The notes beneath the pieces are model-generated. The model saw only the letters and a list, made by a program, of their open reading frames with translations, did no database searches and was not told the origin of the DNA. The position numbers and the translations under genes are program-made. From Octopus sinensis (taxonomy: Eukaryota), in NCBI RefSeq assembly GCF_006345805.1, contig NC_043011.1:2914001-2978000 (forward strand): DNA of 64,000 nt, written 5' to 3'. Each line of letters begins with the position of its first letter. Positions within the stretch are counted from its first letter, which is position 1. Positions 10,101 to 62,304 of the stretch are shown piece after piece.

Positions 10101-10341
10101 ATCTATCTATCTATCTATCTATATATATATATATTTCGATGGATGAATGAATTATCCTATGTTTACCGTTAACATGGAAAATTCAATGAACCGTTACCAG
10201 GGTAGCAAATTCACGTCAGAAACTCGGTTGAAGCGACCTATCCAAAGGTAGAAGCTCTGGGTTAATGTGCAGTAATTTGTGTGTTACAGATAAATAAGTA
10301 AATAAGTGGAGTTGAACGAAGATGTTAATAAAATTCCTTTA

Positions 10342-10423
10342 CTTTTGACATATGTTTCAAAGACAGCATGGTTTTATTCCAAAGGAATAAACGGTGTAAG
10401 ATGCAATCTTCTCGTCAGGAAAG
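10342..10423 (-). ncRNA. Minimal type I hammerhead ribozyme motif (H1 left arm)
   Basis: Minus strand reads ctttc CTGACGA gaaga...tcttt GAAA CATATG TC aaaag; stem III is the perfect palindrome ACATATGT; one mismatch in stem I. Confidence 0.75.
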
Positions 10424-10506
10424 AAAGAGAGCCTCTCTCAACAAGAAGACATTATAACAGCCATTGTAAATGTTATAATTTCTTGTTGTTGAGAGAGGCT
10501 CTCTTT

Positions 10507-10588
10507 ATTTCCTGATGAGAAGATTGCATCTTACACCGTTTATTCCTTTGGAATAAAACCATGCTGTCTTCGAAACATTTGTCGAAAT
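10507..10588 (+). ncRNA. Minimal type I hammerhead ribozyme motif (H1 right arm)
   Basis: atttc (10507-11) CTGATGA (10512-18), stem II gaaga...tcttc (10519-23/10567-71), GAAA (10572-75), catttg, TC (predicted cleavage after 10583), gaaat pairing with atttc. Confidence 0.8.
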
Positions 10589-11793
10589 TAAAGGAATTTT
10601 ATTAACATCTTCGTTCAACTCAATTTATTCATTTATATATTATATATATATATATATATATATATATATATATAAATATATATATATATATTGTGTTAGC
10701 ATAGATGTGCATTTGAGGCAGGATTTTGTGGTTGGATGCTCTTTTTGTTGATTACTCTCATCTTGTAAATGATTTCTTTATACTACGGATTTTCAAAATT
10801 ATTTACTGACCAGTCATAATAACAACGAAAACTGTCAGCAATGACCCACGCAAATCATTCTAGCGTCCAAAGCAGGCATAAAATGAGGAGGAAGACAGTG
10901 ATGATCAATATTTGCTCAGTAAACTTGTAACTGTCATAAATGTACGATAAAGAATGTTAACAGAAAAGGTAAACACACTTTGTAAGTACACAGCCTCATG
11001 CAATTCTTAGATATGCATTACATAATGCACAACTTTATCAAATTCTGAACTATTGTATTTTCAATTATTATGAAGCTGGAAAATGGGCAGAGCCTGTGTC
11101 TTCTCTCTTTAACTGCCAACTATCTTGGAAATGATGAGATAGATAGATGTGTCTGTTACAAGAATATTAGCCTATACTTCAAATGTTTATTTGACTCTCA
11201 CTCTAATATAAACATATACATGCATTCATATTCATATATATATAACAACACATAACTTACAACAGAAACCAATTCACCTTTATCGTCTCTGTCTAGTTCA
11301 AAGCCATTTTAATTATTTGTAATTGTCAATGAATGTCAAATAACTATTTGATACTTTAATACAGTCACTGTCATAATACAACCAATGACTAAAGCTGGTG
11401 AGTAGCTTTAGGTAGTTTAAGTAATCCATCAACCAATGGCTCATAACAACTGAAACACTAGCATTGAAATGTAGCTTTAATGAGGTATTAAGAACTTTAT
11501 ACTTGGTTTTATTATTTCTTGACTAAATTATCAAACGTCATAATATGCAATGCGTCTTTGGCCTTCTACTTTATGAGAATTTAAGGAATTAAATCTGTCA
11601 TCCTATTTAAATGAAGAGAAATGGACTACTGCTTCCTGTGTTGTTGTTGTGGTTGACAATAGAAATTCAATGTTGTAATTTGAGATGAAGTGTCAGAATA
11701 ATTTCAACTGAATATTACTTAAAATCTGAGACTTCGATTGAGAACTTGGCCATGTAGGCTATATGTATGTCAGGCAAATATGGCTGAGAGATT

Positions 11794-12105
11794 TCATCAT
11801 CATCATCATCATCGTTTAACGTCCGTTCTCCATGCTAGCATGAGTTGGATGGCTCGACCGGGGATCTGGGAAGCCAGAAGGCTGCACCAGGCTCCAGTCT
11901 GATCTGGCAGTGTTTCTACAGCTGGATGCCCTTCCTAACACCAACCACTCCGTGAGTGTAGTGGGTGCTTTTTACGTGCCACCTGCACAGGTGCCAGGCG
12001 AGGCTGGCAACGGCCACGATCGGATTGGTGCATTTTACGTGCCACCGGCACAGAAGCCAGTTGAGGCGGCACTGGCATCGGCCACGATTCAGATGGTGCT
12101 TGTAT
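11794..12105 (-). mobile_element. SINE-D
   Basis: Intra-window homology. Confidence 0.9.
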
Positions 12106-12786
12106 TCCGTTAAAATATACTCCCACCTTTTCAAATATGCTGCAGAAGTTGCTTAGTGTTTCTGAGCTGCACACTTTTTACTACATTGCTCAGTTTAGTA
12201 AGGCTGGGTGATTAAATTTCAAGTCATTTGAGAATGCTATCTTTAATAGAAAAATCATGTATCCAGTGGTAGATTTATCTCTCATCCACTTAATACAATA
12301 TAACCAAAGTTAAGGTTTCATGTTTCACTTGCATGCATATACTTTGCATATACCGTCAAAGTTTACTGTTGGTTTATATGTTTTGCATTTATTAGAAAAG
12401 TTTGCTGCTTCTTTAATATTAATATGTTACACAGCATATATTACTAAGGTGTATAGATTCATTTACATACATATCTCTGCATATATTATCAAGGTTTACT
12501 GCATCATTTGTGTACATATATTTGTATCTATTACCAAGTTCTACTGCTTCATTTACACACAAATATTTTGTATATATTATCAAGGTCTACTGTTTCAGTT
12601 ACATACATATCCTTCCATATGTTATTGCTACTATCATCTGGGTTTTTGCATTTACTTTACCCAAATACTAACCAATTAAGTTTGCTAATTTCTTGTAAGT
12701 TGATTGTTTGTCAGTGTTTAGATCTCATTCTCACTACCCATTTTTCCAAGTTACATGGTAAAATAATAATGATTAGCAACCTTAAA

Positions 12787-13008
12787 CCCTTTAGCATTTA
12801 AACTGGCCATATCCGGCCGAAAGTATTCTGCCTGTTTTATGTTCAAACTGGCCAGGTCTGGTCTCTCACACCAACCCTACAATATCGTTTGAAAAATTAA
12901 CAGCTACCTCATCAAAATCTCATAGCTACAAGATTAATGCATGATTAGTTCAAAACAATGTGGATAAAAAAGCATTAATTTTGGCAGAATAATGAGAACA
13001 CTAAAGGG
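12787..13008. mobile_element. piggyBac-type MITE, same family as 60749-60962, opposite orientation
   Basis: Same termini and homologous interior; TTAA flanks decayed. Confidence 0.8.
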
Positions 13009-59808: not shown

Positions 59809-59990
59809 CATACATATGTATGTGTATGTATGTGGGTTGGTTTTTTTTTGTGATTTTCACCTACCTTTAATGATCACTCTCTGTCTTTCTATAATCACAT
59901 CTGTTGCCACCTACAAACATAACATTTCTATAGAGTGACAGAACCAACTAACAAAACGAAGTGATCTGAGACTACCTTTCAGCTAAAGAG

Positions 59991-60135
59991 ATCATCATCA
60001 TCATCATTTAGCGTTCGTTTTCCATGCTAGCATGGGTTGGACGGTTCAACTGGGGTCTGTGAAGCCGGAAGGCTTCATCAGGCCCAGTCAGCTCTGGCAG
60101 TGTTTCTACAGCTGGATGCCCTTCCTAACGCCAAT
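59991..60135 (-). mobile_element. SINE-D 3' part
   Basis: Intra-window homology. Confidence 0.8.
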
Positions 60136-60748
60136 ATCTGAGCATAAATTGTTAATAATAAAATTGGAAAAAAAAATTTTAATCATTGATAAAATTATTA
60201 TATTCAAACACACACAATACTCAAACACACACGCACACAAACACTCAAACATGCACATACATACAAATGCACATCTTGGAACAGAGTAGGAAAGAGTTGG
60301 TGTTTGTTGAGGATGCATGAAGATATAATTACAAACATTTAAATGCATACATCTGTACATATCTGTATGTATCTTTTATTGCTTTCAGTCATGGACTGTG
60401 ACCATGCTGGAGTCACATCTTCTGGATTCTTTTGTCTGGTATTTATTTGTTGATGGATTGGCAGAATCAATGGAACATTGGACAAAATGGTCCAGTGATA
60501 TTTAAATATGTCTCTCTCTCTATGTTTTGAGTTCCAATCCCACCAAAGAAAACTTTGCCTTTTCTCCTTCTGAGAGTTATTAAAATAGAACATTAGTCAA
60601 GTACTAATTCAGGCTGGATGTGAATAGAATACACCTTTTTCTTTTATTTGTTTCAGTCATTTGACTGTGGCCATGCTGGAGCACCACCTTGAAGAGTTTT
60701 AGTTGAAATAATCAACCTCAGGACATTTTTTTATAGCCTAGTACTTAA

Positions 60749-60962
60749 CCCTTTAGTGTTCACATTATTCTGCCAAAATTAATGCTTCTTCATCCACATT
60801 GTTTTGAATTAATAATGCATTATCTTGTAGCTATAAGATTTCAATGAGTTAGCTGTTAATTTTTAAGATGAAATTGTAGGGTTGGTGTGAGAGACCAGAT
60901 CTGGCCAGTTTGAACAGGCAGAATATTTTTGGCTGGATATGGCCAGTTTAAATGCTAAAGGG
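60749..60962. mobile_element. piggyBac-type MITE
   Basis: ccctttag/ctaaaggg termini with TTAA on both sides. Confidence 0.85.
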
Positions 60963-61161
60963 TTAATCACACAGGAGTGGCTGTGTGATAAGAAGCTTGC
61001 TTCTTAACCACATGGTTCTGAGTTCAGTCCCTCTGCATGGCACCTTGGGCAAGTGTCTTCTACTATAGCCTCAGGCTGACCAAAGCCTTGTGAATGGATT
61101 TGGTAGACGTAAACTGAAAGAAGCCTGTTGTATATATATATATATATATATATATATATAT

Positions 61162-61458
61162 TCAAAATAAGCAACAAGGATATCCAAGGTAGTGTAGTAC
61201 CATCGTTTCATGCTACTTCATTTTATTAAACACTGTAAGTATTATATTCAGTTTTAAAATGTCGAGCAATCTTCAGCCACATATAGAATGAAATAAGTAT
61301 AAAAATGTGCATTGTCTGTTTAATTAAAAAAATTTATATGTGGCTGAAGATTGCTTGACATTTTAAAACTGAATATAATACTTACAGTGTTTAATAAAAT
61401 GAAGTAGCATGAAACGATTGTACTACTCTACCTTGAATATCCTTGTTGATTATTTTGA
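61162..61458. mobile_element. Fold-back element H5 (124-bp arms, 49-nt loop), both arms with a hammerhead motif
   Basis: 61162-61285 vs 61335-61458 are reverse complements with 5 substitutions; inserted in the internal (TA)n of a SINE-A. Confidence 0.9.
61340..61426 (+). ncRNA. Hammerhead ribozyme motif (H5 right arm)
   Basis: gtgg CTGAAGA (61344-50) t-tgct...agca-t GAAA (61411-14) cgattg TA ctac; long bulged stem II; U.U mismatch at 10.1-11.1. Confidence 0.65.
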
Positions 61459-62304
61459 TTATAATCACACCATTTGATTTATATGGATAATACCATACAA
61501 AATTCTGGCGCCTTTAACTTAAGTACCATATTCATCTGAATCTAAATTTTGCTGAACTTATATATATATATATATATATAATATATATATATATATATAT
61601 ATTCAAAATAAGCAACAAGGATATCCAAGGTAGTGTAGTACCATCGTTTCATGCTACTTCATTTTATTAAACACTGTAAGTATTATATTCAGTTTTAAAA
61701 TGTCGAGCAATCTTCAGCCACATATAGAATGAAATAAGTATAAAAATGTGCATTGTCTGTTTAATTAAAAAAATTTATATGTGGCTGAAGATTGCTTGAC
61801 ATTTTAAAACTGAATATAATACTTACAGTGTTTAATAAAATGAAGTAGCATGAAACGATTGTACTACTCTACCTTGAATATCCTTGTTGATTATTTTGAT
61901 TATAATCACACCATTTGATTTATATGGATAATACCATACAAAATTCTGGCGCCTTTAACTTAAGTACCATATTCATCTGAATCTAAATTTTGCTGAACTT
62001 ATATATATATATATATATATATATATATATATATATGTATATGTATGTATGTATGTATGTATGTATGTAGGTAGGTAGGTAGGTAGGTAGGTAGTTGTGT
62101 GTCAGTGTTTATCCCCCCACCATCGCTTGAGAACTGATGTTGGTGTGTTTACATCCCTGTCACTTAGTGGTTCAGCAAAAGAGACCGATAAAATTAGTAC
62201 TAGACTTACAAAGAATAAGTCCTGGATTGATTTGTTCGACTAAAGGCGGTGCTCCAGCATGACTGAAATAAGTAAACGAATAAAAGAATAAAAGAATTAT
62301 ATCG

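Follow-up and report, generated by a model that had tools for sequence, protein, structure and literature searches.

Lunse et al. reportedly described, in 2017, minimal dimer-type type I hammerheads in the pseudo-long terminal repeats (pseudo-LTRs) of Penelope-like elements (PLEs). Minimal hammerheads in PLE pseudo-LTRs were also described by Cervera & de la Pena 2014 (PMC4209133), with a bulge after A9, a G10.1-C11.1 pair and palindromic positions 15.2-16.2 as traits, a U3-A8 covariation with ~1,300 matches in Schistosoma, and dual opposite-strand motifs 100-700 bp apart that were attributed to truncated PLEs. For PLE insertions, Craig et al. 2021 (PMC8557442) reported an inverted 5'-truncated copy, a one-sided 30-40-bp tail, (TA)n targets and a CX2-5CxxC linker. 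Non-LTR retrozymes of animals are the subject of Cervera & de la Pena 2020 (PMC7229834) and of a 2026 preprint by Li et al., and PLEs are annotated as abundant in Octopus vulgaris in a study in which hammerheads go unmentioned (PMC13282606). Our literature search found no description of octopus PLE hammerheads, and for a natural hammerhead family with a G3:C8 pair it found an engineered variant only. Here we analyse a 64,000-nucleotide stretch of Octopus sinensis (assembly GCF_006345805.1, contig NC_043011.1, positions 2,914,001-2,978,000, forward strand), hereafter the window, which contains five hammerhead-bearing fold-back elements, H1 to H5. Positions are counted within the 64-kb window, copies were sought throughout the 2.7-Gb genome, and L-numbered loci are copies taken from the genome.

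Very probably these hairpins are dead insertions, each derived from its own PLE family or from a non-coding family that depends on PLEs. Each unit is a 3'-terminal piece of the family RNA, variably truncated at its 5' end and ending in (TA)n either directly or after a family-specific extension. About one insertion in three has, at the 5' side, an inverted second copy with a truncation of its own, always head-to-head with the first. The motifs resemble the PLE hammerheads of PMC4209133 in their conserved core, a palindromic helix III so short that a second copy is required, a short helix I, strong variability between families, a U3-A8 variant and occurrence singly or as opposite-strand pairs; they differ in the octopus host, in the 53-59-nt helix II inserts of H1 and H2 and in the G3:C8 pair of H5, and here they are known from sequence alone. 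As insertions they resemble endonuclease-bearing (EN+) PLEs of the Neptune/Nematis type (PMC8557442) in 5' truncation, an inverted copy at the 5' side, a one-sided tail, a preference for (TA)n, a hammerhead near the 3' end and a GIY-YIG domain following a Cys motif, a likeness seen in these features. The H1 and H2 extensions, at ~95-190 nt, exceed in length the 30-40-bp tail that has been published (PMC8557442), and the copies analysed here are 5'-truncated. With retrozymes they share non-coding units, type I hammerheads with a weak helix III and a proposed dependence on PLE machinery; unlike retrozymes, which form tandem direct arrays and circular RNAs, the copies are dispersed and single or head-to-head, and the only tandem (period 441) duplicates a whole hairpin. 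A retrozyme identity is not supported, since the hammerhead units form no tandem arrays.

All five elements were located in the window by an inverted-repeat scan and direct reading, and they have one layout in common: stem I, a 7-nt core, stem II, GAAA, a palindrome, UH and stem I'. When their arms were compared by blastn-short no primary similarity appeared, only chance words of <=17 nt. A first-pass annotation of this DNA had claimed five hairpins with this layout and unrelated arms, and was right on both counts; its attribution of the ribozyme layout to every element is correct for all five as loci, but H3 and H5 hold the core in one arm only. The polarity it described was also recovered: in the window the 5' ends are central, the 3' ends run outward into TA-rich microsatellite and one arm is longer, with the extension on one arm only in H1 (left), H2 (right) and H4 (right), and the sampled copies of the H1, H2 and H4 families, as well as the H5-family places listed, repeat this polarity. 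Its tally of 8-9 loci including solo copies could not be reproduced, as we count 6 hairpin loci, the duplicated H2 included, and found no solo hammerhead copies in the window with the descriptors used. Two corrections concern extent: H1 reaches left to ~10134 via a 3' extension, and the outer arms of H3 reach 50877 and 51519 across a ~400-bp insert.

Several lines of evidence from the genome indicate that the hairpins are retrotransposed 3' ends. First-look searches returned at least 2,113 candidates for the H1 family (93-96% identity), at least 2,173 for H2 (~95%), at least 2,013 for H3 (92-95%), at least 811 for H4 (98-99%) and at least 436 for H5, for which a 24-nt diagnostic pattern has 1,117 exact matches. 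In alignments of 30 loci each for H1, H2 and H4, which were picked as the best matches of a short 3' query, fewer and fewer copies share sequence with distance upstream (37, 22, 15, 10 and 7 for H1; 29, 17, 8 and 4 for H2; 29, 22, 7 and 5 for H4), and the motif lies 45-130 nt from the 3' end of each unit. The 3' end of these three families is fixed, passing either directly into microsatellite or through a short TA stretch and a conserved extension before (TA)n. Direct entry into a TA repeat was seen in 15 of 26 H4, 12 of 28 H1 and 5 of 25 H2 copies, as against 5.7% of random 30-mers, and another 5 of the 25 H2 copies enter other microsatellites. In the remaining copies (11 of 26 for H4, 15 of 25 for H2 and about half for H1) the repeat is preceded by the conserved extension, which measures ~26-30 nt in the H4 family, ~95 nt in H2 and ~155-190 nt in H1. 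Roughly a third of the H1, H2 and H4 copies have an inverted partner, always upstream and head-to-head, and the listed H5 places include ~10 minus/plus pairs 40-70 bp apart, an inverted partner being present at about a fifth of the places listed; tail-to-tail (plus/minus) pairs were absent from the sampled H1, H2 and H4 copies and from the listed H5 places. At L012/L013 there is one direct partial copy 1.3 kb upstream.

The same data bear on whether the hairpins are instead miniature inverted-repeat transposable elements (MITEs) or other fold-back DNA transposons that integrate at TA, with hammerhead-like strings by coincidence. Their inverted arms do look perfect and adjoin (TA)n, and a genuine mariner-derived element with terminal inverted repeats (TIRs) lies nearby at 62464-63064. 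However, about two thirds of the family copies are single-armed with variable 5' truncation and a fixed 3' end, paired arms are unequal in length, H4 runs on into a PLE open reading frame (ORF), and the motifs occur far above chance, all of which makes this explanation extremely improbable. Complete two-TIR units with fixed duplications are not the majority, single arms with ragged 5' ends dominate, and we rejected a TIR transposon identity. The outcome that the first-pass annotation had named as fatal to its proposal, namely the TIR and target-site-duplication hallmarks of DNA transposons and no association with PLE ORFs, was not what we saw: arms are single and ragged at the 5' end, and H4 comes with a GIY-YIG ORF.

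The coding link is clearest for H4. Five long copies (L034, L037, L038, L053 and L059) extend upstream into a GIY-YIG ORF region, with ORFs at L034:317-751 and L037:268-669; against the Pfam GIY-YIG cutoff of 22.6 bits the L034 ORF scores 27.2 and the L037 ORF 21.5, just under. A C-X4-C-X2-C motif (C-RRPS-C-GI-C) stands ahead of the GIY-YIG domain. A first-look search of the genome for this endonuclease type gave 18,624 candidates, the longest open frames reaching 784-789 aa, and an exhaustive HMMER search recovered relatives of 724-773 aa with the endonuclease at the C-terminus, of which three of four tested (724-747 aa) combine RVT_1 with GIY-YIG. Searches by tblastn with 600-800-aa relatives (residues 359-741) matched upstream of H4 copies only. 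Judged by sequence, H4 is the 3' end of a PLE, since the full-length relatives of its GIY-YIG ORF are reverse transcriptase (RT) plus GIY-YIG proteins. For H1, long copies of at least 1.4 kb contain a 278-aa ORF that ends ~290 nt upstream of the arm and matches Octopus sinensis proteins. One of these matches (P0152) is co-linear with the FLD...GY region just past RVT_1 in PLE relatives (pairwise E ~1e-3), and the C-terminus of the ORF contains a YIG...R...H string and is grouped with GIY-YIG clusters by an ESM Atlas feature search (score 0.95). H1 is thus probably joined to a divergent PLE-type ORF. No PLE ORF was found inside the window by tblastn. Long trinucleotide microsatellites coding for His/Leu, Asn or Asp (L034:885-1184, L037:836-1189 and L004:315-1005) sit in the 3' untranslated region (UTR) or the ORF of the H4- and H1-linked elements and differ in length between copies.

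The two families that keep the full conserved core (C3 U4 G5 A6 N7 G8 A9, G12 A13 A14, A15.1-U16.1 and N17 not G) are H1 and H2. The H1 arms (10290-10459 and 10471-10640) are 92% complementary, with the core CTGACGA on the left and CTGATGA on the right, each followed by GAAACATATGTC. The H2 arms (61157-61285 and 61335-61463) have the core CTGAAGA followed by GAAACGAT(T/G)GTA. Their parts are as follows.

10134-10289, minus strand: H1 left-arm 3' extension ('tail'), ~155 nt, ending ...CATCGAAATAT and adjoining (AT)n/(AGAT)n at ~10100-10133
10290-10459, minus strand: H1 left arm, motif ~10341-10424, core CUGACGA, helix I weakened in this copy
10471-10640, plus strand: H1 right arm, motif 10506-10589, CUGAUGA, GAAACAUUUGUC, 5-bp helix I; runs directly into (TA)n at 10634-10691
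61157-61285, minus strand: H2 copy 1 left arm, motif 61192-61282, CUGAAGA, then GAAACGAUGGUA; ends directly in (TA)n at 61131-61161
61289-61463, plus strand: H2 copy 1 right unit, motif 61338-61428, its 5' side longer than that of the left arm
61464-61558, plus strand: H2 3' extension, ~95 nt, then (TA)n at 61559-61602
61598-61999, no strand assigned: H2 copy 2, tandem duplicate of the entire hairpin, extension and (TA)n

Helix II of the H1 right arm spans 53 nt and is closed by G10.1-C11.1, and the H1 family consensus has CUGAUGA, the same closing pair, a rod-like 53-nt helix II, GAAACAUAUGUC and a helix I in which a single mismatch separates 5 pairs from 4. The H2 consensus consists of CUGAAGA, a 4-bp helix II base with an unpaired U on each side, a long insert and GAAACGAUUGUA; the H2 palindrome is self-complementary once G-U pairs count. 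The H2 duplication (61131-62042, period 441 bp, 2.1 copies, 99% identity, second hairpin arms at 61598-61904) probably arose by unequal exchange between (TA)n tracts, rather than being a PLE tandem.

The remaining three elements depart from the canonical core. In H4 (arms 50559-50629 and 50733-50803, with an inverted repeat that continues inward to a 12-nt loop) both arms have the core TTGAAAA followed by GAAACCGGTA. H3 (arms 50909-50959 and 51031-51081) has the core CCGATGA on the plus strand only, and in H5 (arms 44308-44387 and 44640-44719) ATGAACA lies within the hairpin loop.

50559-50674, minus strand: H4 left arm, motif 50606-50648, UUGAAAA; its 3' end adjoins TA-rich microsatellite at 50534-50558
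50687-50803, plus strand: H4 right arm, motif 50713-50756, UUGAAAA, helix II GGUC/GACU, GAAACCGGUA, helix I with 5 of 6 pairs
50804-50838, plus strand: H4 one-sided tail extension, AAATATAT CAACTC...CATCCT, then TA-rich repeat
50877-50959, minus strand: H3 left arm, inverted copy 5'-truncated inside the hammerhead, keeping only GAAACAGCUGUA, the helix I 3' strand and the tail
50960-51081, plus strand: H3 right unit, motif 50996-51047, CCGAUGA, bulged A, GAAA(A)CAGCUGUA, helix II 9 bp, helix I 4 bp
51082-51483, no strand assigned: later insertion splitting the H3 right arm, a short interspersed nuclear element (SINE; copy at 51086-51240) plus microsatellite
51484-51519, plus strand: H3 right-arm distal end, inverted repeat of 50877-50912
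44283-44387, minus strand: H5 left arm, inverted copy 5'-truncated within the helix II loop
44388-44416, plus strand: H5 right unit, 5' part, AUGAACA (family core GUGAACA), bulged G, helix II
44417-44639, plus strand: SINE within the H5 right unit, flanked by a 16-nt duplication (GGTCTTAAAGCGACGA, GGTTTTAAAGCGACGA), with further copies of the insert in the window
44640-44745, plus strand: H5 right unit, 3' part, GAAAAUAUUUU, helix I 3' strand and tail

The H5 right unit is truncated exactly at the core, so that the 5' strand of helix I is missing; the family motif is GUGAACA, a bulged G, GUCGC/GCGAC and GAAAAUAUUU, with a perfect 7-bp helix I in L023. The H4 family consensus reads UUGAAAA (U3:A8), GGUC/GACU and GAAACCGGUA. 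A more distant relative of H3, in L033, has a CUGAUGA core and a mutated GAAA. The SINE copy that splits H5 was mapped at 44406-44640, others in the window lie at 36623-36857 and 45922-46157, and SINE 3' ends also adjoin (TA)n.

Chance was gauged on 200 shuffled versions of the window, made block-wise by a Markov model. The strict form of our type I descriptor asks for CUGANGA, at least 4 bp in helix II with closure at 10.1-11.1, GAA, a 6-10-nt A...U palindrome, any N17 but G, and helix I. It had one match in the window, the H1 right arm, and none in the 200 shuffles; allowing a Watson-Crick N3:N8 option added both H4 arms, with a shuffle mean of 0.01. A looser descriptor that permits a bulge after A9 or one unpaired closing nucleotide gave 7 matches, all in H1, H2 and H4 (three independent families), with a shuffle mean of 0.23; it was used in place of an intermediate version that was too strict and had no match in the window. 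Accepting any NNGANNA core gained H3 together with two likely chance matches (shuffle mean 2.0); those two, at 13815 and 45637, have non-hammerhead cores within chance expectation and were rejected, as was CTGACGA...GAAAC at 35564-35592, a chance match outside any hairpin and devoid of helices.

Folding supports the same architecture. Minimum free energy folds and cofolds recover helices I and II. In unconstrained cofolding of two copies each of H1-H4, helix II forms within each molecule, and helices III (the palindrome) and I form in trans; the H5 family motif folds, also unconstrained, as a monomer three-way junction with a helix I of 7-8 bp and a helix II of 5 bp. Across the five families 4-7 pairs of helix I, counted from the junction, and 4-9 pairs of helix II are formed by unrelated sequences. 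Variation within a family is uninformative about the helices because the copies are dead. Between families the core variants are a U3:A8 pair in H4 and a G3:C8 pair in the H5 family, both Watson-Crick swaps, and C4 in the window copy of H3, and at family level the 3:8 pair is always Watson-Crick: C:G in H1-H3, U:A in H4 and G:C in H5. G3 is present in 99 of 100 listed H5 places (of the 1,117 exact matches) and C8 in 98 of 100 listed; in 2 of 100 listed copies core position 8 is G (UGAAGAGG), position 3 lying outside the view of that search. A bulged nucleotide follows A9 in H2, H3 and H5, G10.1-C11.1 is found in H1 and H5, and palindromic 15.2-16.2 also recurs.

A PLE origin has to be weighed against several observations, gathered here, that speak against it or against a working ribozyme. 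The RT is deduced from relatives and open-frame lengths and was not read directly beside any copy. For the H1 ORF, Pfam detected no GIY-YIG, a profile built from H4-type endonucleases gave no match, and a single-sequence AlphaFold2 model had a pLDDT of 35 and was unusable. No PLE ORF was found by tblastn beside any copy of H2, H3 or H5, in a sample that is small and biased to short copies, and the 27 sampled H2 copies are all shorter than ~300 nt, none reaching more than ~250 nt upstream. Of the linked ORFs that the first-pass annotation proposed to look for, a GIY-YIG ORF exists for H4 and a probable divergent PLE-type ORF for H1, and none was found for H2, H3 or H5. On the side of the ribozyme, the Rfam hammerhead models had no match in the window at gathering score, and at E-values up to 10 no hammerhead stood among the first 150 matches, mostly microsatellite-driven look-alikes of microRNAs; minimal PLE-type motifs and long helix II inserts are expected to score poorly in Rfam, and it was the missing match that led us to write explicit type I descriptors. 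The helix II inserts of H1 and H2 (53-59 nt) are unusually long. C4 in CCGAUGA seems to be the majority state of the close H3 subfamily: at position 51003, contigs of four public runs aligned to 50300-51400 contain no variant at or above 10%, which are weak data. This change is expected, from published mutational data, to cripple the hammerhead core, and if C4 is the majority state, amplification evidently needs no intact ribozyme. The RNA data are assembled contigs of uncertain RNA status, in which variants at family level are visible but no RNA ends, strands or usable expression level.

Two alternatives draw on these points. H2, H3 and H5, perhaps also H1, could be separate short non-autonomous elements, SINE- or retrozyme-like, that borrow PLE enzymes and have a hammerhead module of their own; the lack of an ORF beside any H2, H3 or H5 copy and the shortness of every sampled H2 copy fit this, and animal retrozymes are interpreted as non-autonomous derivatives of PLEs in the Li et al. 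2026 preprint. However, sampling by a short 3' query would miss rare long copies, H1 and H4 also seemed short before their longest copies were inspected, there is no tandem array of units, the retrozyme hallmark, and ARAGORN found no tRNA-like head in 14 loci, and we consider separate non-autonomous elements possible, though with the balance leaning against them. The second alternative accepts the PLE tails as real and holds that the hammerhead-like motifs are relics or chance with no catalytic role in any family. The apparent C4 of the H3 subfamily is in its favor, as is the fact that Naiad PLEs thrive without canonical hammerheads and that PLE hammerheads cleave poorly in vitro (PMC8557442, PMC4209133). 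Set against this, five unrelated families keep the architecture, Watson-Crick pairing at 3:8 in three forms and compensated helices, and the H4 family, very young at 98-99% identity, has an intact motif in its consensus; relics or chance in every family seem to us unlikely. The derivation from PLEs, with the hammerhead as part of the element, remains the better account. What the first-pass annotation had read as ultra-short inverted insertions of PLE lineages or retrozymes agrees with the truncation gradients, fixed 3' ends, head-to-head partners and the H4 and H1 ORFs, but not in its retrozyme part.

How might such insertions form? We propose that the GIY-YIG endonuclease would nick a (TA)n target, with cDNA synthesis primed from the RNA 3' end. 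Since (TA)n is its own complement, equivalent primers could be available on either strand of the break; two cDNAs, begun at the 3' end on opposite strands, may then meet where their 5' ends are truncated, a joining that would give every fold-back the same polarity. That the 3' ends fall into two classes may be due to priming at either a terminal UA-rich stretch or one inside the RNA, or may represent the one-sided PLE 'tail'. The hammerhead would reside in the 3' UTR or pseudo-LTR of the master element. With a palindromic helix III it is predicted to be active only when two copies of the same sense dimerize, as tandem or read-through transcripts might allow; in the head-to-head insertions the motifs are on opposite strands and could form no dimer in cis, read-through would give a long hairpin, and the copies would be inert passengers. 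A more ambitious version holds that the 3:8 series C:G, U:A and G:C (the last in at least 1,100 copies) and the hammerheads with 53-59-nt inserts are all active in the masters, and that symmetric double priming at (TA)n lies behind the polarity; we put this forward tentatively and would sooner expect part of it to fail.

Inverted retro-insertions might also have been made by twin priming of a long interspersed nuclear element (LINE) of L1 or CR1 type, with the units being LINE-dependent SINEs. Twin priming is known to yield such inversions, octopus genomes are rich in LINEs and SINEs, and our proposal itself resembles L1 twin priming in deriving an inverted insertion from priming on both strands of a staggered break. 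But L1 twin priming places an inverted 5' part beside a direct 3' part and uses an apurinic/apyrimidinic endonuclease, whereas both arms here are the same 3'-terminal segment and the sole coding partner found is of GIY-YIG type; one-sided tails and (TA)n targets also fit PLEs. LINE twin priming is accordingly very unlikely, and priming by PLE machinery is preferred.

These results leave the known picture of PLEs unchanged and extend it to cephalopods. The novelty implied in the first-pass annotation was overstated, as opposite-strand pairs, U3-A8, inverted 5'-truncated copies and (TA)n targeting have all been published (PMC4209133, PMC8557442); what is new is modest, namely the G3:C8 family, the long helix II inserts and the long one-sided extensions. 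The window is nonetheless a compact natural record of PLE integration by five unrelated families. In the four families with sampled copies, head-to-head doubles make up a fifth to a third of insertions, and a one-sided tail is common to H1, H2 and H4, a regularity that constrains models of the poorly understood PLE integration step. Head-to-head PLE copies account in part for repeat content in octopus genomes that is rich in hairpins and hard to assemble. Compared with one another, the families support in vivo a Watson-Crick covariation of hammerhead positions 3 and 8, G:C among its forms, and the apparently C4-mutant H3 subfamily (at least 2,000 first-look candidates) suggests that short copies can amplify without an intact ribozyme.

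Several other repeats occur in the window. A 66-nt inverted repeat (9138-9203 and 9750-9815, 100% complementary) surrounds 546 bp, and a 187-aa ORF on the minus strand (9537-10100), which has no Pfam match, leaves the flanked stretch through the right arm. Pfam searches of ten window ORFs returned only an unrelated RT_RNaseH_2 fragment; this ORF fragment, at 40605-40973 (56 bits), is the remnant of an LTR retrotransposon. At 48970-49128 there is a GC-rich 62-bp tandem repeat (2.5 copies, 78%). Two partial copies of the common octopus SINE at 62096-62394 are inverted and 77% complementary, with a polarity that seems unlike that of the PLE pairs. The fold-back at 62464-63064 (arms 62464-62642 and 62885-63064) is a genuine TIR element whose inner part resembles the beginning of a transposase of mariner type (MAAPLAMWTKEEQRAVI); as a DNA transposon it contrasts with the PLE hairpins.

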